64,000 nt of DNA from Trichoplax adhaerens (taxonomy: Eukaryota; Animalia; Placozoa). Position 1 is the stretch's first letter. Each line of letters begins with the position of its first letter. The notes below the pieces were generated by a model. The model did no database searches, was not told the DNA's origin, and worked only from the letters and a program-made list of their open reading frames with translations. The position numbers were made by a program, and so were the translations under genes. The stretch is taken from the NCBI RefSeq assembly GCF_000150275.1, contig NW_002060954.1:1736001-1800000 (forward strand), written 5' to 3'. This document shows positions 14,148-31,500 of the stretch, piece by piece.

Positions 14148-15509
14148 CTAATTTAAACTTACATTAACTTCTGTGTCTACGATTTTCTGCTAAAAATTTG
14201 AAATTTCTCATAGTTGTATTACTGTTAAATATTTTTACTCATAGATTTATTTACGTTTGAATGTATTGTAGGTACAGTACTGTGTATACCAATACTGTTC
14301 AGTTGTATATAAACGGTATAGTAGTACGATTTATAATCGAGATTTATTTGCTACAAAATATTGGTAATAACGTTGTTTAAACATCTTTATGTACAGTGAC
14401 ATATATATTTTTTGACGATATGTGTGTATAGTTTAATGGAAAATAATGACGATATATCAGGCACTGGGTTTTATGGTTACCATTGATAAAAATAAAAATA
14501 TATCTAGATTTCGAAATAATGGACATGTTTCTATATCGTTATTCTATTTGACGTATGGAAACACATCATAAAAAACAATTATTGTCTGTACATATATCAT
14601 GCTTTTTAAGCCAGATATCGCTTGAGCTATACAAGCCTAAATTAAATAACTACAAGAATTCCTTTAGGACGCGAACTCTACGCAAGTAAACCGCCTGGTA
14701 AGATGTCTACATGCATGCATTAATTAATACAACACCACTTTAATCTATTCGTATAGAGAGAGTAGTAAAGGTATTGGACATTGGTGCAATCATTAAATCA
14801 GTATACGACCTGCTACTTTATTTTAAGCGCTTGTTATTTCGCAAGCCTGATATCAACATTTATCAATCTCATTACAATACATTCACATATATTGGATTTA
14901 GATTATCAACCTCTTTAATCTACTACAGTTATTCAACTAATGCTTAATTAATACGACACATTAGCTAATACGCAAAAACAAGGCGATCTGTGTAATTAAT
15001 AATGCAATAAGCCAAATTTTGTTATCCTACATCAACTGCTAACTAATTGTAGGTAAACAACGAAAATCGTAGTTGACTTGATAATTACTAATCGATCTTC
15101 CTAGGGCAACCATAACCTAATCATCTAGATTATGAAGTGACTATTTTTAGATCGTGTGAGAATATCTTCAGTTGTTTGCCTTCACTGTTTAGAGGTATTG
15201 TTTGACGTTAGAAATGATACCATTATGCAATATATGCCCTAAAATGTACAATTTTTTTTATCTTAATTTAGATAGTAGCGGTGGATTATAAGGCAAATAA
15301 AACATTATAAACAGCTTTGATTCGTTGACTACAGTAGAGCTAAATATAAATTATACTACGTACAGTACTATAGATTCAATAGAACGAGGTGCCGAGTTTG
15401 ATTACGTATGCATAGCTAATTAGCTTCATTATATTTAGTATCAGCTTCAACCAATCATATGCCTCGAGTAAATGTATATATATATACCTGGTAGAAAAAC
15501 ATTTTTATC

Positions 15510-15910
15510 ACTAACGATGGCTAAATTCAGTCTTCCCCAAGTACCCTTTCCGCCAGTTAACACTGAATGGAAAGGAGTACTGTCTTGGATTCCGATATGA
15601 AACGCTTACTTCGCTTCCTTCGATCGGCCTGGGATTCGTTCTAATCAATGGTGTATTTTTCGGGTGTTATACAATGTTGTACATTAATCTGTCAATACAA
15701 CATGGAACAGATCACTGTCCTTTCAATCGGTTGTAGGTGGCTGCTTCACAGCGATTTCGCCGTCACTCAGCAGAGTGCTAAGAAATAGGAGCAGTTATCC
15801 CTATGACCACTCGCTACTATGCTTATCGCTTCGTTGCTCGCTCTTCTTGTGGCTGTGAAGTTGAGAAGTTTATAGTCAGTGATTGGTCAATTAGATGAAT
15901 TGTCTAGTAG
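15510..15910 (+). ncRNA. Putative structured ncRNA, copy A of an unidentified ~400-nt family
   Basis: Shares CAGCGATTTCGCCGTC (15749-15764), GTGCTAAGAAAYAGGAGC, GACCACT and GTGATTGGTC with copies B and C. Helices covary between copies, the ends pair, and a TATATA run sits at 15475-15486. No shared open ORF. Confidence 0.65.
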
Positions 15911-18050
15911 CTAATTCCTTTAGCTGATGGCAATTTGAGTTATGGTAAGGTAATAGCCGTGCACGATGGATACTAATTAATTTAATTTATTTTGTTGTAC
16001 AGTAGGCTTTCTAAAGCCAAGTGAAGTCAATTTTTTATCTTTAACCAATATGATCAAAAAACATGATATGTAATGGATGATAACGTGGTAATGTATAATA
16101 ATAGTAAGTTCAATAGATTCAACATGTCTTACATAGAGCATTCTGGATATACATTAGCAGTCAAATTGTTTTGCCATGGTTCACTGCTGTAACTGTACAA
16201 TGACAATCTAATTACTCCAAATTAATTCCTTAACAGATATTTCAGCGACTTACAGTGAAATGTAGGCTATTTTAGGTAGTTATAACTCGTCAATTCTTAA
16301 GTAGATCTTCACTATGGTTAAAAGAAGACATATCTTCGTCAGATTGAATGTATTAATACACACAAGTATATGTCTTAATGCCATTATATATATACTAGTC
16401 AATCCTCATGCTCTACACTGTATCGTAATGATAGTTAGCGAATAGCAGTCACTTGTAACATTAAGTATTGTGAAATTATTTATTTGCCAAGCTACTATCT
16501 TTAATGTAGAATCTTTGTACTATTTTAGTGTGATTTTATAGCTGTGCTACTAACCCGCTTGTCACTTATATAATATAATTGGTCTAATAAAATAGATGCA
16601 TAAACTTCAAGTCAATCTAATTTTTTTCCTCATACAGTATTAATAACTTGAGGTCTTGAGGTACTATACCTCTTCCAATTTTAAAATCTCTATGTTTAGT
16701 GAAATTTTGTTTCATCTTTGAAATTCGTTACCAATAAAATGAAAGTTCTTTGTATCGCTTTTATGCATTATTGGTCTTTCCTTTTCTCAGATATTTACAA
16801 GAGCTATAAAGTTGAAAATGTACAATATTATTATTTTAATACTATAGCAGTCTATTATAGTACTACAGCTGTGCCACTGATTGGTGATAACTTAACTAAA
16901 GGTTAGTTCTGCTATGCTGTTGTCACAGAATTGCTATAATACGCAATACTTTGCGAAATTTAATATATTTAAACATTCTTAAGTTAATCAGAATTAACAT
17001 TAAAATCAAATTAACTCAGCTTTGTTACCGTATAGTTTAAGCCAATTTTATAGTTTTTCAAATATTCGATACACGAGTATAAAGTCAGTCTATGCGTATA
17101 TAGCAAAGAAGGTATCATGTTAGTACTTGCATAAAAGCAAGATTTGAGAAATCAAGCTGTAAAATGTAGTTACATAATGAGACGTTCATAGCAGCTTTAT
17201 ACACGCTCACTAACGGAGTCCATTTGATAAAGCTTGCTGTTGCGTAAAAAATTCACTAATACTGAAAATTTTATGCATTTACAACGTATACTGAACTATT
17301 TTATCTGGAAGTACTGTTTTAGATATTTGGATTAAGCTTATATTCAAGATCACAGTATTATAATTGTATCAGACCAAAGAGTTGGTCGATCCTGTATTAC
17401 ATGCTGGGTCTGTCATATTACCTTATGCTGATTGAAATCGCAATGTAATATACTTGAATATGTCTATACGAGTAGTAATGACAATTAAGTATAGCGTACT
17501 TGTAGATGCTTTTAATTTTTCATTCATTGATATTTAATGATCCTATTACTTCTTGATGAACTGACTTGCAGCATAATGTTAGTTTTCACAAGTATAGAGG
17601 ACAATTTTCTGGTTAAAATTAATGAGCTTTATTTTTTAATTCGTCATCATACACATCAAGATAATAACCGTCTACTCTATATCCAATTAATTACAAACAT
17701 AAATAATAACAGCATTAAAACTACAGATAATTTTAATCTTATAACAAAATATAACAGTACGATCATCTCGCTGACAAGACTACGCTCGTCTGTTTATTCC
17801 CGAGAATGTTATGCAATGCAAGGTTAATTTTTGTAAAAAGATGTGATGTCATATCAAGGCCGTAGTTATAATATGCTCAGAATAATTATTAATTATTAAT
17901 TGAGTAACAGAAAAAGAATTCTGTTATTCTATATTTGAAACGTACAACAGCTTCCCCTCAGATATCTGCTGAGGCGTTGTAATGTAAAATCTTTCTAGTT
18001 TACTATTAATTACTCTGCAGAGGCGATAAGCACAGTATGAAGTAAGATTA

Positions 18051-18410
18051 ACAGTGAATTAAGTTTTGTGCTGCAAACTAACTGCTATTCAGACATGTAG
18101 AATATGAGTGGCATCGACAATGAATTAGTGACTACAAATTACGTCGTAACTGCTATTCTCACCAAGCTGATCATTTATTTCCCAAACGCACTAAATAAGT
18201 AGGATCGATGTTGAATTAAGTACTACAAATTGCGTTGCAAGTACTGTACTATTCTCGCTAAACTGGCCGTTCGTTCTTGACAGCGAATTATTTACTGCAA
18301 GTTTAACACTATAAATTACATCACAACTACTATTCTTACTAATATTATCACAGAGGCATTAAAGATCTTTTAAATTTACAATTAAATTATACTGCAACTC
18401 ATTCCAAAGA
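18051..18410. repeat. Degenerate tandem repeat, 4-5 units of ~65-95 bp
   Basis: Recurring GAATTA..(G/C)TACAAATTRCGT..ACTGCTATTCT at ~18051, 18117, 18210, 18281 and weakly 18375. Confidence 0.55.
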
Positions 18411-18544
18411 AGTATCAGCATATTTACAGCCCAAAAAACTAATATAAATCATGCTATAATTGACTCTACTTTGGCAAAAGCATTGAACAAATCTTATCAT
18501 GATACTTACCCATGCTGAAGTTGTTTACTACTGATGCTGTTTTA

Positions 18545-18996
18545 GTTGTAAAATCATCAATACTGTATTAACAACTTCAGATTTGATGGACCAATCACAC
18601 TGTCCTTGGCCATTTCGGTTGCTTTAGATCCACATCAAGTGAATAGCAACCGCATGATAAGTCTAGTAGTAAGTGGTCATAGGGCCAGCCGCTCCTGTTT
18701 CTTAGCACTCTTCACGAGAGACGGCGAAATCGCTGCAGAAGAGCTGTCCTATAACCGGTTGAAAGGTCGATGATCTCCTCCATAGTGTAGCAACAGGCTC
18801 AATTCCACCCGCAATAAATACATCATTGATTGGAATTGAACATCTACCAATTGAAGGAAGCGTTTGCACGTAATGCTACGGAATCGAAGATAGCACCCTT
18901 TTCCAATCGCTACAAGCGAGAGGAAAAGGAGCTTGATGAAGATGAGAATCAAGCATAATCATCACCGCAATAGCTTTCAAGCAAGGATCTTACATT
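18545..18996 (-). ncRNA. Putative structured ncRNA, copy C (most diverged)
   Basis: The reverse strand carries CAGCGATTTCGCCGTC (18735-18720), GTGCTAAGAAACAGGAGC, TATGACCACT and GTGATTGGTC. Hairpin 1 is CCTTTTCC/GGAAAAGG with apical TCGCT/AGCGA. TATAAAA at 19006-19000. Confidence 0.65.
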
Positions 18997-19549
18997 TGCT
19001 TTTATACGAGTACCGATTCGGTCTACTACAATTGTTGAGGTCACATCTGCCTATGATTGATCCTTTGCTATTATCAGGTCTTTGATTATGTTTATGTTTG
19101 TGCAGTACTGTATAATACGATTATCCTAGAGACCCTAGAGAGAAAGAGACCAGACAAGTCTTTGTTTAAAAAGTTTCCATAACTATTATAATTATAATTC
19201 ATCGTATGTAAAACGTTCGAAAACGTTTCTACGACGTTGGCAGATTACTTACGGTGATATACTGATATTACATGGCCGTTACCATGACAATCGACATTGG
19301 TACTACACGATAATAGGTAATCTTTCTAAAAATAGTTCCATATATTAGCTTGTCGAATACGATACAATGGATTTATACCACCGTTTAGGCAGTGTTTAGG
19401 TGGTTGGTTATTGGCATATAAGAGATCAGGTAGCGGACAATACGCTACAGTTGCAATGACATCATCGCCTAAATTTTTCTAAAATTAGCCGAAAATCCTT
19501 TCCATCAATGGTTCGGTCGGCATTCAAGAAAGTATAAATGCAATCAAAT

Positions 19550-19985
19550 TTTCTCGGTTGCTTTACATAACGATGATTGGACTAAGTCTTCGTCAAGCAC
19601 CTTTTCCACCAGTTCAGTCTGAGTGGAAAAGAGTGCTTTCTTGGATTCCATGGGAACTCTCAATGTGCTTACTTCGCTTACTTCGAAATGACGATGGTTT
19701 TCTCTGACGAAGGGTGTATTGCTATCAGTAAGAACTTGCCTGTTAATACACTCTGGAGTCGATCAAAGTCTTTTCATCCGGTCGAAAGAACCTGCTCCAC
19801 AGCGATTTCGCCGTCACTCTATGTGGGTGCTAAGAAATAGGAGCAGTTATTCTGGAGACCACTCGCTACTATATCTTTCACTTCGTTGCTATCCTAAATG
19901 TAATATCATTTTAGAGCAATGAAATTGAAAGGTGATAGTCAGTGATTGGTCACTAAAACGGACAGTTGAACGATGATAAAGTAGG
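19550..19985 (+). ncRNA. Putative structured ncRNA, copy B
   Basis: CAGCGATTTCGCCGTC at 19800-19815, GTGCTAAGAAATAGGAGCAG, GACCACTCGCTACTAT...ATAGTCAGTGATTGGTC. Helix AGGGTGTATTG/TAATACACTCT. TATAAA at 19533-19538. Confidence 0.65.
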
Positions 19986-21722
19986 TAAGGTATTGTCTAA
20001 ATTATAGGAAGTTGAGTTTTTGGTTAAAAAATTACTTCACTATTGCTAGGATCGATGCCATAGCATTAAAGTAATGCACTAAGTTATAGCTATATAAGAA
20101 TTCTAGAATTCTCGCATTGCATCTAATACTACAGCCACAAGACATTTGTCCTCGTCTCTAATACCAAAGTAAAAAGTGTTCTGTCATCTTTATACATATT
20201 CGTTATATTTAATAAATTGTTATATAACACCTCAATTGCTAGTATCCTACTTTTGACGTTACAATGTAGCTTATTCATAGTATTACTGACTATTCTCAAT
20301 CATAGAGCATCTTCTCCTACTATGATTTCCAACTCTTAAAAGTAATTTAAGCTCTTTAAATTAGGAATGAAAGTAACTTCGATATTTTCAGTTTTATTTT
20401 TGTATCTGCATACTGTATAGGTAGTATTTATTAATAACTTTACAAATTATCGAGGTATCTCAATGTATAAATTACCGTTGCTTGTCTCTTGAAGAACAAT
20501 AAAGTATTTGAAAAAAATTTTTATTATCACTGTTTCATTAATTGAATTGCTTTTAAATATTTGACGTGACATAAATAAAAGTAGCAAACTGTAGTAGAGT
20601 TTAGAGCTACGTAGATAGGTAAAATGATGTATGCTACTACAGTCAAAAAACTCTTTGCAACTGAAACAAATTATTGCAGTACTGCAAACTGAAATATTCT
20701 ACTCGGTTAGAACATGTACTCACCACGAGCATATATTACGAGCATAGATTTCATTTCTACATACGAGTAAATTGCAAGGATAAATTTTAATGTATATTAC
20801 CCATAGTATTACTATTCCAAACATGGTCCACTTGCTCTTATACATATTTAGGTTCAAGTTAAACTAGTAACCCTTTTAATTTTCAAAAGCTTAACACAAG
20901 AATACTAGTATTGGGTTATAATAGAAATGTATATTACTAAGCTATTTATGTAGAAAAATGCAAAATTTAGTTGGTATAGCAGATACTATTTGGAAGTATT
21001 AATCGACTGATAAATCAAAAGAGTAAGCTCATTCTATTAAAATAAGTTAGGCGTGCAGCTAATCGCATGCATAATGAAAACTCATAGATATAGAGTATTC
21101 CTAATTTAGAGGGAATACATATCCTGCCGAAATAAAATTTGGTGAACACTTCGAGAGTTGCTTCCTCCTTCAGGGGTATCATATTCTAATCATAAAAAAA
21201 TTAACTACATAGAAGAAAAATGTTTTAGACAAAACGTGCAAAAACTATTCTTTATTTACAATGCGTAAAATACTGCTCAGTACGTAATTTGCGGCTTAGT
21301 GATAGGAATACATTTGAGTACGACCACATTTAACTCTCTATGCAAATGTAACCTTCAGAAATGAAATAGCTTCCTACTGCTAAAATAGTCCCCTTTGTAT
21401 AAATTGGCTACAGACTACTATAACTGTACAAGGAGGTCGTTAACACAAATCTGTCGATTTCAATTAGAAAATTTAGTTCGCAAAGGTTTGACAAAATAGT
21501 TAACACTTGCCTACAAAGCTAACAGATAATTTGCAAATGAAATTCCATCGCTCTTTTTAAACTGTTTAACTACTACTAATTAAATTACATTAAATGTGTA
21601 ACGTATATTTATATGATATCTAGTCCTCTAATAATGGGTATCGATCCATCAAGATATCAAACATTACATGTGGACGACTGTTTAAGATACGATTGTATGT
21701 ACCATTGATAGTGGTCAACTTT

Positions 21723-24700
21723 TTAATTTGTCGTCACTTTAAAACTACTAGATGTTCCATGAAAAGGTTGTTTATCGCCCAGTAGCCCTTTACTATGACC
21801 AAAATGTTGAATTCTATAGGTACCAGCCGGTGTATCTGGTGAGATAGTCCAAGTGATTTTGGCTGTACTTGAGGGATCAAGTATGAATGGCTTGTGCCAA
21901 TAAAATCGTGTATCCCAATCACCATCAGTTAACCGCACATGCCACTTACCATGCTTGTCTTGCGTTTCAACCGTTAAGAATGTTCCTTCAGTCTTACAGT
22001 AGATAAAAAGATGATATCAGAAATTGCCTTCGCGAAGGTCATGTGCTTACTTATTAACGCTAACAATTAGAGAAGTTAGCAATTTAACTACTGGTGATTA
22101 CCATTAAATTGTTTCTGGGATCAGCGGAATAAAATATTACTTCTACCGTTTCATTCTAAAAGTTCATTAACGACAATATTAGCACATACCATGCAACTTT
22201 TATGAGTCGTAGCCTTTATAAATTTTTCTTATGCACATTTATTCAAGTTTAGTAACGTACTGTATAGCAATAAAAATTAAAAACTATACTGAGTAGATGT
22301 GATGTCTAATTCCCTCTGAAAACTTACAACTTTATACTTGGACTTAACATCTTGTTTTACTTGACCAAACTTTTTACCAATCGGGGCTGAATCAAATACA
22401 ACACCAGGAACAAATGATAGCTGCTTTTTTAACAAATTTGGTGGAGTCGGTCCAGGCTTAACAGCTTTACCCTACATCACCATGGTATATATTATGTTAT
22501 GCTATCGAAATGCGAATTTAATTACAGTGATTTCAAGATTACTAACACAAAGCATACCTTAACTAAAGCTTGTGATAACTCAACAAACTTAGAGATATAA
22601 GCCTGCAAGGTATGAGGTCCATAAATTGTAGAAGCTCCTTCATAACGTTGTGCCTAATCATGAATTGCCAAATACAGAACGTAAGAATCATTTATTCATT
22701 GGCTAACAACGTGTTTATTTTTATAGACTCACATGATATTCCTCATACGTAGCGATGTAATCTGCATACGTGTTTGACAATCCAGCAATAACAACAGTGG
22801 TATCATTACCAAAGTGCGCGTCAACAACCTAGCAATAGCAAAAATTTCATTTAATGATAATATCTATTTAAACATATCAATTTATGTAGCTGTTAAACAG
22901 ATCTGCTTACTTTATGAACAGCGTCTCTTACTCGTCGACCAGACATTGTGCTGCATTAAAAAATATTTTTTGAATTATTACTGCTTGTTAGATAAAATGT
23001 CAAGCTATTTAAAAAGTTCCATAAAAATGTAGTATTAAATCATGATCATTGTATAACCCTTGCTACTTACGTAAATTCCCCTGGAACAGCTACAATAACA
23101 AAATTTCCGATTCTTAATACTTGTAAATCCACTATAAAAGGTTGCCATCGGTAGGGAAATTTAATCTAAAAATGAAAAAAAATAAAATGAAGAAGCTTGT
23201 AAAAATCAATAGGGTATGGTGGTCCGTGGAACTTGTGTACCTCTCCTGTATCCAGTAAAATAGGTTTAGGATGTTGACACGCAATCTGTTCTTTAGATGG
23301 TTTTTCTAAAAACTTGACAATAAGGTTCCAAAATTCGTTTCCAGTTGTGCTGCCTAACCAATGATATTAGCGACTGTTATTAATTGAAAATACTATATAG
23401 TCTTTCAATATTTAATAATAAAACTAGCCTTGTTGAAATCCAAACATTCCTGGTCCATCAGTTGTTCCAGCGGCAAAGCTAAAGCCCATAGCTGGTTTGC
23501 AAGTATGAACTTTGGTACCATTCTTTAAAGTTACCGCTACGTTAGTCATATCGACATACATGTGCCGGAAATCAACAGGCCCTGTTACTTTCTTCTTTGC
23601 ACCGTCATACAATTCTTTTGCCTTGCTAAACTGATTGCGACCAATTATCTCGGTACTTTCAAACATATTTGCACCAGGTCCTCTTCCAATACACTTTGTA
23701 TCCTAAATTTACATAATAACTCCAGTTTTTAGTTCGAAGATAAATGAAGTCTCTATTCATACAAAGGCCGAAATGAAATTATGGAATTATAGAATCTGAA
23801 ATAATGTAAGCTAGCCATTGTTATTTCCAACAGATTTCTTGATATTATTACCGAAATAGGACTATTATCAGTTTCGTATTTAATAGAAATTATTTATACA
23901 TTGCTATTGACTCATGCATCAATTTAACCAAACTTACATCGCCATTGCAGGTACTGTGATTTTTATTGCAGGGTTTACCGGAATCGATGCAGAAAGGACC
24001 GCGAGTATTGGGAGATACATCACCCTCGTTGCTTTGGGCAAACGCGGCAACAAAAGATCCCTATAGAAATACATAGTGTATGCTAAACATTTAATATACT
24101 GTACTGTATTAGCTATACTTAAGGCATGATCATATATATTGCACTTGCAACTGCAAATAATATTGATTAGTAGGCAAAGCCGTTAAGACATCAAGAAATT
24201 GATTTATAGGCGCTCGTCTGTATAATTCGTTGTACTGTATTATCTAATAAATATTAGGCAGCATCCTATCGTACAGTATCAGTAACGCAAACTTTCAATC
24301 TTACAAAACTTACTTTCCCGGGGAGAGTACTTTTTCCATTCATTTCCTTTTCAAATAAATAGGAGGCATAACCTTTATTGTCACCGCTGACTAATTCGTT
24401 TGTATTATTCATACTAGTTCCATGAACTGCAAACCAATTAACCATACCAATACCATGGCCTTTAGCATCGGCCATCTTTAGCAAGACCATTTCCTTATCA
24501 ACGTCATACTTGTATCTATTATAAATAATTATTACCGAATTACTACTTAAGTGTCAAGGGATAAGAAATCTTAAACATCATCTTTAAGTAATGAATTATA
24601 ATCATTACGTAATAGAATTCTAACAGTCTCTTATAAAATAGCCTATTCGTGAAGCCGAAAAAATAATTTATTGCAAAGGTGCATCAATGGTATAGAATTC

Positions 24701-26179
24701 ACAGCTAAAAAGTCTTACTTTGCTCTTTCCTTTGGAGGATTAAATAGATAGGCAGATGGACTTCTATTAATGTTACTATTCAATAGTTGTCCCTGATTGA
24801 CGAAGATATTGCCAGGCTTTATATCAGCATGTGCCTTAGCAATACTTTCAACAATTCCATCGACGTAAGCAAAGAGTGTTTGATTAATAAAACCTAATGA
24901 GGTAATGTCAAATAAAACATATTGGAGGAAACCACCGGGACCAGAATGGGTATGGATGCCGCTAATACAAACGTTCTCCTCGGTATACAATTTACCGAAG
25001 CGAGCTTTAAGCTTCTTAACTACCTATATGATATTAAAGTTAACAAAATGACGAAGCTGTTACGTTTAACAAATGTATAATAATAATATCGATTATACAG
25101 TATTGCAAAAATATCATGCAGTTATTATATGAATGTTTTATTGATTCTTCTCGCGAAGGCTTTCATCGCAACAACTGCTTCTACTTTTACCATGCTTAAT
25201 AATTTAACTTAATCTACTTCCAGATAATGAAAATATTATCGTTCTGTGTTAGAGATATGCAAAACTAATAACTATATTATCAGTAGCAATAAATTTATAA
25301 TCCATCAGCGTATAATGATTATAGTTGCTTACCTCTAGCTTAACAATTTGATCCACCATACAAGCGTCAATGCTAACAAATACTATTCTACTTTTATTTT
25401 GCTTGTCATGTATAATAAAAGCTCGGCTGCGTTGACGGAAATGTATACCCTTAGCAGTTTGGGAAGGGTTAGCATAACCCATCTGTTGAAACAATATATG
25501 AGTATTGAATTAGATTCACTTGATATTCGAAAAGTAGCATCAGTAATATAACTAACGAAATAAATATCATTATCAAGGTACTTTAGATAAGATCTATAAG
25601 TAGTGATAGAATATAAGGTAAAAAATGATGAATGCAGAATTTGAATAAGGATAGAATTCAATGATTTGTTTGTGTGCTGCTTAATAATGTCTAACCTATA
25701 GTAGATAGTGACGAGCAGAAGGTATCAGGATACAAACCGTATCAATAATTAAGCAGTATCGCACCGTACAGTCTACATTAAAATCAAGTTTTACGTCCCT
25801 TTAGCAAATCCTAATGATTGAAACATATACTTGTTCACATCTGTACTTTAATGAATGGAATTAATCAAATTTAAATCAATCGGTCGTTATCACTTGTTAT
25901 AGCTTCAATAGGATATTATATACTGTATCGTATCCATTTTCCGTTGCTCGTCACCATCAAGAATTCAGATATTACGTATGGTGTTATCCTTCTTAAGTGC
26001 ATAATAATCACAAGAGTAATCTATCCAATTAATTTAATCTATTTTACCATATTAACATCAGCAGCAGGACCAGTAATATCATGGATGCCACTTCCAATAA
26101 AATATTCTGTGGATTCGCCTCGGATAAGACCGAGGATCGATATAAAAACTAGAAATGAACAAGCCAACACAGTCTTCAT
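21723..26179 (-). CDS. ASAH2: Neutral ceramidase, multi-exon, with signal peptide
   Basis: ATG at 26179: MKTVLACSFLVFISILGLIRG..IGSGIHDITGPAADVNM|MGYANP. Also HTHSGPGG, NWFAVHGTSMNNTN, GDNKGYA, EGDVSPN (neutral ceramidase catalytic motif), SFAAGTTDGPG, YEGASTIYGPHTL, GTYRIQHFG. Confidence 0.95.
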
Positions 26180-28564: not shown

Positions 28565-31500
28565 ATGACCATATCTCCATTATCGCAACAAGGTAATGCG
28601 CGTGTACTGTAGAATTATTTTTTTAATAATTATAATCGCACACATTAGGATAAAGATAGTATAGTAAAGCGCTGAATTTTATTATCGGCGTGTCTTAGGC
28701 CGATTTTTAATTACTCCAATATTGTTTTAAGGGATGAAAGAAACGTCAAAAAATCAACCATCAGAGGATCTAAAATCCGTAAAACGTCTTCACCGACATG
28801 ATAAAAGCATTATGCAATCCATACTGAAATTTCTGTATCAGCCGATCGATCCGTCATCTCTTGGTATTACAAGGGTTTTATTCGGTGAGAACTATCTACT
28901 GCACTTGACACGGTATTACTTAAATGGGTGTTCAATCTGTTTAAGTATGCTGCAGAAATTAAATCTTATTTAAAGCCTAGCTTTTAAATTAACTGTAAAA
29001 TGCTATCTAGGCTTTTTGATGATCTTTGATATTACACAAGAACGTGGCATGGTTTACATCAACTTAAGATGGGGTGATCCGAAAGCCTGCGAATTTCCTT
29101 TACTAAGCAATTTACCAATCTTATCTGCTGACTGGATGCATATTTTGTATTTGTCGATGATTGCTGCTGCTATCGGTATATGTATCGGATTTTACTATCG
29201 TATCGCTAGTATCTGGCTTGCACTAGGCCATTGGTACCTTATCTTGATAGATAAAACTGCTTGGAATAATCATACATATCTTTTCGGCCTTTTTACAATC
29301 TTCTTTTCAGTTACGAATGCTAATCGATGGTGGTAAGTTGCCATATTTATTGATATTGAAGTATAGTTGTGACAAAAGAGAAATCACCACGATCACTTTA
29401 AAAGTGTGATATACGTATCGATGTAGATATCTCTTCTACATGGCTATTATGCTTCTTTTATCTACTACAATTTTAAGTTTACTAATTATATATAATTAAT
29501 TAAACCCTATAATTTGAACAAAATCAAGGTCTGTTGATGGAGTCTTAAATCAAAAAATTAATAATGTTCATATTCCACGTTGGAACTTAGCGCTGTTTCA
29601 GTTTCAGGTAAATACAACTACAAAATAAATTAAGTATGTGGTACCTTATCATCGGATGACTTACTGTAAATATTTATACTTCGAAACAGATTTTCTTGGT
29701 ATATTTCTTAGCTGGCGTGAAGAAACTTAATTCTGACTGGATTACGGGTAGTTCAGTTACGACGGTTGGCAGTCATTGGGTTTTTGCCCCTTTGCGTTTA
29801 TTATTAACTACCCAACAAATAAGCCAATATGTTTTGCATTATGGTGGATTAATCTTCGATTTAATTGAAGGATACTTACTCTTTTTCAACATTACTCGAC
29901 CCTTAGGAATTGCATTGGGCATTTACTTTCATATTTGTAATTCGCAGATTTTCACCATAGGAATTTTCCCTTATGCTATGTTAGCCACTCTTCACATCTT
30001 TTGTAATCCTGATTGGCCAAAAAAAGTTATCATGAGGCTGTCACCTCGATGGAGAAAATATTTCTTGCTCGATACACCACCAAAATATTCAGCATCCAAT
30101 TGTTATTATAACGATTACAATCCAGATGACACTGGAAGTAGTGATCAAGAACGACTAGGTGATTCTGTTATAGAGAAGAAGTGGATACAGGAAGATTCCA
30201 CTAAAACGAAAGGAATACAACAATTTAATTCACAAAATCGGCTGACGATGGCCATACTAGCTGGATATGTAACTCTGCAACTTTTTCTACCCTTCTCTCA
30301 TTTTATAACCCAGGTAAAAACTACTGGTATATACTGTCTAACAAATGTAATTGTCGACTATGAGTATAGGATCATCAATTCATTTTAAGTCAAAATAGAT
30401 TAAAGATATTTTCTGCATTATCTAGTTTAAATATTCCGTTCAAGATGTGATAGAAATACTTATCTCTTATATTAGGGCTACAATACATGGAATGAGCGTG
30501 GTCTTTACGGGTATTCGTGGGATATGATGGTAAATAGCTGGTCTTACCCTAAAATTAAAATCTTAGTTGTGGATTTATCTAATGGTAAACAGTATGGCGT
30601 TTTACCAAAGGTAATATAACTGCTAATTAAGGCAATCACTCAATATCAGATTTTATCAGTTCTTGCATTAGACCATGAATGTATTTACATCAGCATTCCA
30701 TTTAAACATCGCATTACCAAATTCTATACTTGAATATTTCGGTTCATATTTGTAATGCTTTCAAAATTGATGCTCCAAAATATTTATCAACTTATATAGT
30801 ACGATATGTAATATCAATTTTATAATGACGATTTCATTAAGTGAATATAGTAAAATGGATATTTTGCAAGAAAATGGATGTACTAGCTATTAAGATCAGT
30901 ATCAAGTAATAGCAAGGATAATTCATTTTATAAAACAACGTTATTTAAATGTTTATTTGTCTCCTATAAACTTATTAAAGTATCACGCTTCGATAATAAT
31001 TATTACACATTGGTCAGAGTCCAATATTGCTAACTGAAATAGGTTCAATGTAATGGCCGATAATTAATCTGTAATTAAAAAATATTTACCGCTCCATGAT
31101 ATAAAAATATTCTTGTGTATAAGTATTGATGCCGAATATGAGCGATGGTATAGCTAATTTAAGATAATTTTTTATTAATTAATCTTATATCTTCATTTAC
31201 ATATATACTGCACTTTAGAGCTTTATTGGTGGCGCAGATTCAAGATTTCTACGCTGGAGTACTTATCCTAGCATGATTAAGCAATACGGCAATTGTCTTG
31301 CGAAACAAATGAAAACTTCGTATGAAATTAAACAGCCAGCAGTGTATTTGGATATTTGGAAGTCAATGAATGGTCGATTTAGGCAAAGGCTTATCAATCC
31401 AAAAGTTGACATCGTTTCTGCACCGTGGTCACCATGGAAAAAGACTCCCTGGTTAATGCCATTGCTAGCTAATTTAACCAACTGGAGAAATAAAATGCCC

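Follow-up and report, generated by a model that had tools for sequence, protein, structure and literature searches.

Three diverged copies of a sequence rich in predicted secondary structure are clustered in a 64,000-nucleotide stretch of the Trichoplax adhaerens genome (contig NW_002060954.1, positions 1,736,001 to 1,800,000; hereafter the window, from whose first base all positions are numbered), and the question raised by this locus is whether they are genes for a structured RNA and, if so, of which kind. On balance, the copies are probably paralogous genes that encode a structured long non-coding RNA of the Pol II mRNA type restricted to this lineage.

Three diverged copies at a single locus

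The three collinear, diverged copies reported in the first-pass annotation were recovered by alignment. These units, about 430 bases long and all within 4.5 kb, are copy A (15505-15944, plus strand, which runs from its inferred start up to the base that precedes the splice-donor GT), copy B (19562-19984, plus strand) and copy C (18510-18977, minus strand), the last being head-to-head with respect to B and convergent with respect to A. Over the conserved 400 columns, pairwise identity was 71% for A-B, 65% for A-C and 64% for B-C. All three units are GC islands (44-45% GC in surroundings of about 30%), with more T than A in the sense strand.

A search of the whole 105.6-Mb genome by blastn, by a scan with the 16-mer core allowing up to two mismatches and by a covariance model built from arms 3 and 4 rather than from the full unit has revealed these three copies only, which were matched by the model with 186.5 (A), 201.3 (B) and 174.2 bits (C). 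No fourth degenerate copy was detected near the cluster in the covariance-model search, and the invariant core had no match in a scan of metagenomes. A SINE, MITE or other dispersed repeat, a possibility raised in the first reading, for which numerous scattered copies bearing terminal repeats or target-site duplications would be expected, was rejected on this copy number and on its confinement to the cluster.

Fold stability and arms of the unit

The MFE of the whole unit was -117.9, -129.2 and -134.0 kcal/mol in A, B and C, with z values against dinucleotide shuffles of -3.07, -4.63 and -5.02, respectively; six flanking windows used as controls gave z values between -1.9 and +1.2. The antisense strand folded worse than the sense strand in all three copies, by 14-23 kcal/mol. 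When the MFE z was calculated for each arm, three of the previously quoted hairpins (hairpin 1, arm 3 and arm 4) were significant in every copy, and arm 2 did not prove robust because its z values were only -0.15, -2.62 and -1.19 in A, B and C, so that it lacks thermodynamic support in A and C.

Hairpin 1 (A 15529-15591, plus; B 19585-19647, plus; C 18882-18944, minus; z -4.10, -4.96 and -4.48 in A, B and C) shows two-sided change in two column pairs, 45/82 and 49/77, and its apical stem in C is rebuilt from a different sequence. Arm 4 (A 15806-15889, plus; B 19858-19952, plus; C 18588-18677, minus; z -3.18, -7.24 and -3.72 in A, B and C) is a long hairpin whose base (GACCACT / GTGATTGGTC) is invariant and whose apex varies, and four two-sided changes are located in its helix 13. 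Helices 5-7 of arm 2 (A 15622-15724, plus; B 19685-19775, plus; C 18761-18852, minus) are 80-96% paired, with four two-sided changes. The proposed pairing of the two ends of the unit appears as seven pairs in the RNAalifold consensus, but it includes no two-sided change and competes with the base of arm 4, and both this closing helix and arm 2 are weakly supported.

Arm 3 (A 15729-15808, plus; B 19780-19860, plus; C 18675-18756, minus; z -3.38, -2.70 and -2.61 in A, B and C) is predicted to form a junction that comprises two small hairpins and the single-stranded, invariant CUAAGAAA. The alignment of the three copies revealed the invariant runs CAGCGATTTCGCCGTC and GTGCTAAGAAA in this arm; conservation is strongly uneven along the unit, which includes an invariant run of 16 nt. 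The units could be placozoan-specific, abundant and stable RNP or catalytic RNAs with the invariant three-way junction (CAGCGAUUUCGCCGUC ... GUGCUAAGAAA) as their core for activity or protein binding, without counterpart in described families, a reading that we consider possible at best. If it were true, the units would be among the very few animal Pol II mRNA-type RNAs with a structure truly maintained by selection; to our knowledge, convincing cases of selection-maintained secondary structure are rare among animal long non-coding RNAs.

A short reading frame at the 5' end

The first-pass annotation had stated that no reading frame stays open across the copies; however, from an aligned ATG onwards, the three copies have an open frame of 26 codons in common. 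This ATG lies 40-50 nt 3' of the TATA box (in A, the TATA-like run is 31-42 nt ahead of it), and the frame overlaps hairpin 1. The short ORF of A (15517-15600, plus strand) has 27 codons and a TGA and encodes M..PFPPV.TEWKGVLSWIPI, that of B (19573-19707, plus strand) has 44 codons and a TGA, and that of C (18876-18956, minus strand) has 26 codons and a TAG. A codon test over columns 8-97 gave a BLOSUM z of 2.1, with no stops against 4.4 expected, and 17 synonymous differences were counted in the 26-codon frame against 11.3 expected. This 5' block is weakly coding-like. No coding signal was found by the same test in seven later blocks 3' of column 97, and stops and frameshifts vary between copies. 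The homologue search revealed no relatives of the 44-aa ORF of B or of a 67-aa ORF across the core, none of seven ORFs matched Pfam, and the ESM Atlas returned nothing usable. A protein-coding gene over most of the conserved length was rejected on these grounds, the signal being limited to columns 8-97 and both homologues and Pfam domains being absent.

The same data bear on a bifunctional or small-peptide mRNA, in which a peptide of 26-44 aa (M..Q.PFP....[ED]WK.VLS.IP) would be the conserved product and the rest a 3' region acting on transcript stability, localisation or translation, as in ENOD40 or SRA. The aligned ATG, the open frame, the BLOSUM score and the synonymous excess agree with this, as does the location of several differences at third codon positions, but with a z of about 2 the signal is weak, the stops lie at unequal positions (27, 44 and 26 codons), the leader has just about 5-20 nt, and the peptide lacks a homologue or Pfam match and has a low protein-likeness score. 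In addition, the roughly 300 nt 3' of the ORF exceed it in conservation, and the two clearest compensatory changes of hairpin 1 are non-synonymous (V/A and G/R), which is better explained by RNA pairing. A peptide mRNA is therefore considered unlikely.

Putative promoter, splice-donor motif and probable type of transcript

The upstream TATA boxes of the earlier annotation were found in the three copies. They were read from the sequence as a TATA-like run in A (15475-15486, plus strand), which is accompanied by a CCAAT box (15451-15455, plus strand), a TATAAAT box in B (19533-19539, plus strand) and, with the aid of the alignment, a TATAAAA box in C (19000-19006, minus strand); B and C have GTATAAA(T/A)GCAA in common (alignment columns 3-15). 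No upstream elements shared among the copies were detected by sensitive blastn. A PSE, stated to lie upstream of the Trichoplax U1, U2, U5 and U6 genes (PMC2655684), was identified as ACCATAAnTGAAG about 55 nt upstream and common to these four genes of the genome, and sequence inspection revealed none upstream of A, B or C. An snRNA-type gene (U1/U2/U4/U5/U3-like, Integrator-processed) was rejected because this element is absent from all three units; no Sm site is conserved among the copies.

A sense-strand GGTAAG is located 32-78 nt 3' of arm 4 in all three copies, as part of the splice-donor motifs G/GTAAGGTA in A (15944-15952, plus strand) and B (19984-19992, plus strand) and G/GTAAGTAT in C (18502-18510, minus strand). 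The background frequency of GGTAAG is 14 per strand in the 64 kb (one per 4.6 kb per strand). Runs of T4-5 are present inside the three units, also in the conserved hairpin 1, with four of them in B, and transcription by Pol III is unlikely for this reason. As the conserved GGTAAG donor ends each unit, the units have the appearance of first exons made by Pol II in transcripts of the mRNA type, and with the short ORF and the lack of a PSE these transcripts would seem to be non-coding, with the structure in their first exon. The 26-codon ORF, the GGTAAG donor after each copy and the missing snRNA PSE had gone unnoticed in the first reading.

Downstream of the units, sensitive blastn and signal scans, the latter being uninformative, revealed neither a shared second exon nor a 3' splice site or poly(A) site that is conserved. 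The conserved donor directly 3' of each unit and the layout of promoter and short ORF would also be expected of structured leader exons (5' UTR plus upstream ORF) belonging to three unrecognised protein-coding genes with their coding exons beyond the donor. This is improbable, considering that the three downstream regions have no sequence similarity to each other, that A and C converge on one 2.5-kb stretch and B lies 1.7 kb from the 3' end of a neutral ceramidase, that the downstream ORFs, judged on reading alone, are not protein-like, and that strong 3' splice sites were absent from an uninformative scan.

Conservation pattern and covariation

In the consensus structure of the three copies 90.6% of cells are paired, and 11 two-sided compensatory pairs were observed, whereas shuffles gave 4.5 ± 1.6 (0/500) and slid controls 0-5. 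When a structure derived from a single copy was tested on the other copies, p values of 0.01-0.08 were obtained with the structures of A or B, and the compensatory change was not significant with that of C. The compensatory changes claimed at first are thus real, but their excess is modest once the test is made non-circular, and the covariation, moderately significant, is suggestive rather than conclusive because it comes from just three sequences, all of them paralogues. Identity was 71-80% in paired columns vs 51-54% in unpaired columns, and among the 33, 30 and 15 gap columns of the three pairwise comparisons only 0, 1 and 1, respectively, were paired. The stable fold, the strand bias, the confinement of indels to loops and the compensatory pairs speak for selection on the structure, and the earlier description of a small multicopy family conserved in sequence and structure on the TATA-side strand is borne out.

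If the units were decaying relics of a dead gene or of a duplicated spacer, their structure would be inherited from the ancestor and not selected. The faintly protein-like frames, with stops and frameshifts that are unlike between copies, are in line with such an origin, and pair counts are inflated by shared ancestry in a set made of paralogues only. Nevertheless, neutral decay to 64-71% identity should erase the stability that is retained in all three copies (z -3 to -5), and it does not account for the uneven conservation with its 16-nt invariant run, for the higher identity of paired positions and the confinement of indels to loops, or for the retention of TATA and donor motifs in every copy; no intact parent gene was found anywhere in the genome by blastn or with the covariance model. 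This origin is hardly probable.

A small-RNA precursor, with hairpin 1 and arm 4 as Dicer substrates within a primary transcript that is miRNA-like or of the polycistronic hairpin-RNA type, is very unlikely: there are several hairpins, both strands of hairpin 1 and the arm 4 base contain about 20 conserved nt, and weak generic matches to unrelated miRNA-precursor models exist in Rfam, but these are at chance level and unlike between copies, the most conserved part is the branched arm 3 junction, atypical for such precursors, and published small-RNA sequencing of Trichoplax reportedly found no miRNAs.

Known RNA classes

The claimed absence of the units from known families held in a scan of Rfam 15, with no matches at gathering score across the whole window and, at E<=10 across the region and for each unit, only chance matches that were unrelated and different in each copy. 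A 7SK or Pol III type-3 RNA, for which the absence of an internal T4+ terminator, a T-run end and a 5' hairpin with paired GAUC motifs were considered, was rejected on account of the internal T4-5 runs, the lack of a common 3' T run and the lack of a 7SK match at E<=10. The placozoan telomere repeat is TTAGGG. Telomerase RNA was also discarded, as no 6-, 7- or 8-mer of (CCCTAA)n is present in any copy, in agreement with the lack of a CCCTAA template noted before; only one Trichoplax telomerase RNA gene has been reported, and its domains are the canonical template-pseudoknot, CR4/5 and H/ACA ones (PMC8480181). With regard to a box C/D (boxes RUGAUGA and CUGA), H/ACA or U3-like snoRNA, likewise rejected, GUGAUGA was found in C alone, and complementarity to pre-rRNA was not conserved, with no shared 11-mer or longer and counts at the control level. 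No conserved complementarity to U1, U2, U5 or U6 was found either.

Proposed role and relation to known systems

For the favoured reading as structured, mRNA-type Pol II non-coding RNAs, we infer transcription of the units, their exon status, the binding of a partner and a function along the following lines. Each unit would be driven by its own TATA promoter, with or without a CCAAT-like element, and the first exon of about 430 nt would fold into three robust domains, namely a 5' hairpin, a junction domain carrying an invariant 16-nt stem-loop together with the invariant single-stranded CUAAGAAA, and a long 3' hairpin. The GGTAAG donor just 3' would recruit U1 snRNP, and the transcript would then be spliced onto downstream sequence that is not conserved or be handled in a U1-dependent way. 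A partner common to the three RNAs, either a protein or a second RNA, would probably dock at the invariant junction and arm 4 base, and the variable arms would be what differs from paralogue to paralogue; with a common docking site and variable arms, we propose that the three RNAs may serve this partner as alternative scaffolds or decoys.

We know of no structured long non-coding RNA of such a kind described in placozoans. The three members of this compact family, with their own promoters, an invariant junction core and variable arms, have a size that suits Northern blot, probing and partner pull-down, and as natural paralogues they already show which nucleotides are constrained. If expressed and kept in other placozoans, they would constitute a new RNA family for Rfam and could hint that an early-branching animal has an RNP not known so far; if not expressed, they would be a warning against inferring structure from small paralogue sets. 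The published Trichoplax ncRNA catalogue contains universal classes only (PMC2655684), and nothing comparable was found in the Trichoplax ncRNA annotation or in the titles and abstract openings of the Trichoplax/lncRNA literature.

Pol II snRNA-type genes, 7SK and telomerase RNA resemble the units in their 300-500 nt range, multi-domain fold and TATA-bearing promoter, whereas the units have no PSE, no Sm site common to the copies, no telomere template hexamer and no Rfam match and contain internal T runs. Human vault RNAs and Y RNAs are about 100 nt long and transcribed by Pol III, unlike the units of about 430 nt with T4-5 runs, a TATA box without PSE and a splice-donor end, but their clusters are similar in having three to four diverged paralogues with their own promoters in a few kb, and invariant protein-docking motifs combined with variable stems, docking being predicted in the case of the units. 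ENOD40, a plant mRNA-like riboregulator, and SRA1, an animal bifunctional RNA, belong to other lineages and have no sequence or structural homology to the units (no Rfam match), so that the analogy, drawn from general knowledge, is one of kind only: like them, the units would be RNAs of the Pol II mRNA type that combine structure with a very short conserved ORF, and they would also share with them a low number of paralogues and a main long frame that is non-coding.

Copy number and genomic context

Alignment placed the three diverged copies of the candidate structured RNA unit (about 430 nt each) at about 15505-15944 (copy A, + strand), 19562-19984 (copy B, + strand) and 18977-18510 (copy C, - strand), and they are collinear, as the first-pass annotation had described them. 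Pairwise identity over the 400 conserved columns was 71% for A-B, 65% for A-C and 64% for B-C. Copies B and C are arranged head-to-head with a gap of about 585 nt, and A and C converge on an AT-rich spacer of 2.5 kb. This spacer contains, 3' of the copy C donor, a direct repeat of about 56 nt in two to three diverged copies spaced 91 nt apart (18104-18159 and 18195-18250, also 18040-18064/18197-18221; 71-76% identity), to which Tandem Repeats Finder gave no score. The cluster lies in the interval beyond the 3' end of a neutral/alkaline ceramidase gene (21723-25500, that is 21.7-25.5 kb, - strand; Pfam PF04734 and PF17048), and a gene for a vitamin-K-dependent gamma-carboxylase-like HTTM protein (28700-30400, + strand; PF05090) is another right-hand neighbour.

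A search of the 105.6-Mb assembly (1414 contigs) with blastn found exactly three copies. Matches to the invariant 16-mer CAGCGATTTCGCCGTC with 2 mismatches were at control level elsewhere in the genome, and a covariance model of arms 3 and 4 recovered the three copies only, both genome-wide and with filters off over 14 kb of the cluster. This copy number excludes a dispersed repeat of any kind (SINE, MITE or other), one of the findings named at first pass as speaking against a functional RNA.

Fold stability and probable selection on structure

The observation of three structured units has been confirmed. Whole-unit MFE z-scores against dinucleotide shuffles were -3.07 (A), -4.63 (B) and -5.02 (C), and those of six flanking 400-nt control windows ranged from -1.9 to +1.2. 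In every copy the antisense fold was weaker by 14-23 kcal/mol than the sense fold (the TATA-side strand), which also had the more negative z-score, in agreement with the strand preference proposed earlier. Among the successive helical domains, z-scores for A/B/C were -4.1/-5.0/-4.5 in hairpin 1, -3.4/-2.7/-2.6 in arm 3 and -3.2/-7.2/-3.7 in arm 4, with low values in arm 2 (-0.15/-2.6/-1.2).

The RNAalifold consensus comprised 114 pairs, with standard pairs in 90.6% of cells, and 11 pairs carried two-sided changes, compared with 4.5+-1.6 in shuffles (0/500 as high) and 0-5 in slid controls. Since this consensus was derived from the same alignment on which the changes were counted, a non-circular test was added in which the structure was taken from one copy alone and scoring was restricted to the other two. 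Structures derived from A and B kept changed pairs above the expectation for independent substitution (p 0.01-0.08), and the MFE structure derived from C, scored on A and B, showed no excess. Column identity was 71-80% in paired versus 51-54% in unpaired positions, and for the three pairs of copies only 0/33, 1/30 and 1/15 gap columns fell in paired positions. In GC content the units are islands (44-45% versus about 30% in the surrounding DNA), and T exceeds A on the sense strand in all three copies, including the inverted copy C.

Several independent measures thus affirm a structured RNA over most of the unit. The z-scores, strand bias, flanks, compensatory pairs, loop indels and composition together constitute good evidence that the fold of the TATA-side RNA is under selection, formal covariation significance being out of reach with three paralogues. 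The structural selection claimed in the first-pass annotation is probably real, except that arm 2 and the closing helix, a pairing of the two unit ends, are weak.

Coding potential

Amino-acid similarity, synonymous differences and stops were evaluated by column shuffling in every ungapped block and frame. The sole coding-like signal was found in the first block (columns 8-97), in the frame of the aligned ATG, with a BLOSUM z of 2.1, 17 synonymous differences versus 11.3 expected and 0 stops versus 4.4 expected; all blocks 3' of column 97 lacked a signal in any frame. The earlier statement that no frame stays open thus holds for the later blocks and not for this one, which is open for 26 codons in all three copies. 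A small-peptide or bifunctional mRNA, to which the peptide M..Q.PFP....[ED]WK.VLS.IP would correspond, is nevertheless considered unlikely: its stop position differs (27, 44 and 26 codons in A, B and C), its protein-likeness score is low, and neither a homologue nor a Pfam match was found. The short ORF overlaps hairpin 1, where the two cleanest compensations (columns 45/82 and 49/77) match a non-synonymous change with a partner change, as RNA pairing predicts. Homologue and Pfam searches with other ORFs spanning the core were also empty, and the units are mostly non-coding.

Promoter and splice-donor motifs

The sequence GTATAAA(T/A)GCAA is common to B and C and a TATA run is present in A, 31-50 nt upstream of the aligned ATG, with a CCAAT box 5' of A and a resembling ATCAATCATA 5' of C. 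The U1, U2, U5 and U6 genes recovered from this genome have in common an upstream PSE, ACCATAAnTGAAG, at about -55; a PSE upstream of Trichoplax snRNA genes has been described (PMC2655684). The Pol II snRNA genes U1, U2 and U5 combine it with TATA-like boxes at about -30, and octamer-like ATGCAAAT/ATGCTAAT elements lie farther 5' in U2, U5 and U6. Inspection by eye of the sequence upstream of A, B and C revealed no such PSE, which rules out an snRNA-type promoter. Pol III transcription is disfavored because the units contain internal T4-5 runs, of which B has four.

A sense-strand splice-donor motif is located 32-78 nt past arm 4 in all three units; it reads G|GTAAGGTA in both A and B and G|GTAAGTAT in C. 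Across the 64-kb window each strand has just 14 occurrences of GGTAAG, and the chance odds of three such placements are about 5 in a million. Regions downstream of A, B and C share no common sequence by blastn, and scans there assigned neither an acceptor nor a poly(A) site convincingly. The simplest reading of these signals is that each unit may supply the first, structured exon of a Pol II transcript of the mRNA type, the rest of which would be unconserved. The same donor would fit coding genes so far unrecognised, with the units as their structured leader exons, a quite improbable explanation in view of the empty downstream comparison.

Conserved core and proposed function

Conservation is focused on the arm 3 junction and on the base of arm 4. 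The junction comprises a closing stem, a small GCG-AUUU-CGC hairpin, a CACUC/GAGUG hairpin with a variable loop and the invariant unpaired CUAAGAAA; the arm 4 base conserves GACCACU / GUGAUUGGUC. Toward their apices the arms vary, with compensating changes. Relics without function are as improbable as leader exons beside this invariant core.

An invariant junction with variable arms is the pattern typical of a fixed docking surface upon a variable scaffold, and a model is therefore favored in which the A, B and C RNAs might serve one common partner as alternative scaffolds or decoys and U1 snRNP would engage the conserved donor. The complete proposal appears somewhat probable, the binding model by itself being less certain than the broader notion of a functional structured non-coding RNA.

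In the segment that joins arm 4 to the donor, copy C carries an additional 11-bp hairpin, CUGAAGUUGUU...AACAACUUCAG (18515-18580, - strand), and copy A a shorter one, AGCUAA/UUAGCU (15910-15926), unlike copy B, which has none. Rfam matches at 18515-18580 (-) were miRNA-like and at chance level only. A small-RNA precursor is the least probable alternative for the units.

Comparison with known RNA families

Rfam 15 yielded 0 matches at gathering score in the whole window and, at E<=10 per unit, chance matches only, different in each copy, so the search proposed at first pass gave no consistent family for any copy. The (CCCTAA)n hexamer is absent from all copies, as previously noted, which rejects telomerase RNA; for Trichoplax, one telomerase RNA gene, canonical in its domains, has already been reported (PMC8480181). 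C/D or H/ACA guide RNAs were discarded because the boxes are unconserved and pre-rRNA complementarity is copy-specific and at control level. The arm 4 apex of copy C (18637-18649, - strand) is perfectly complementary over 13 nt, GGTTGCTATTCAC, to the 5'ETS/18S boundary in this genome's pre-rRNA, a match limited to 8 nt in B and 6 in A; it is probably due to chance, as the total match count is at control level. For U1, U2, U5 and U6, complementarity did not exceed 7 nt.

The initial interpretation as independently transcribed ncRNAs is partly supported: probable structural selection and an undescribed family stand, but the lack of a PSE and the presence of a donor point to an mRNA- or lncRNA-type rather than an snRNA-like transcript. 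The nearest RNAs in kind would be the structured mRNA-like riboregulators ENOD40 and SRA, and the nearest in layout the small paralogous ncRNA clusters of vault and Y RNAs, but A, B and C are members of none of these families.
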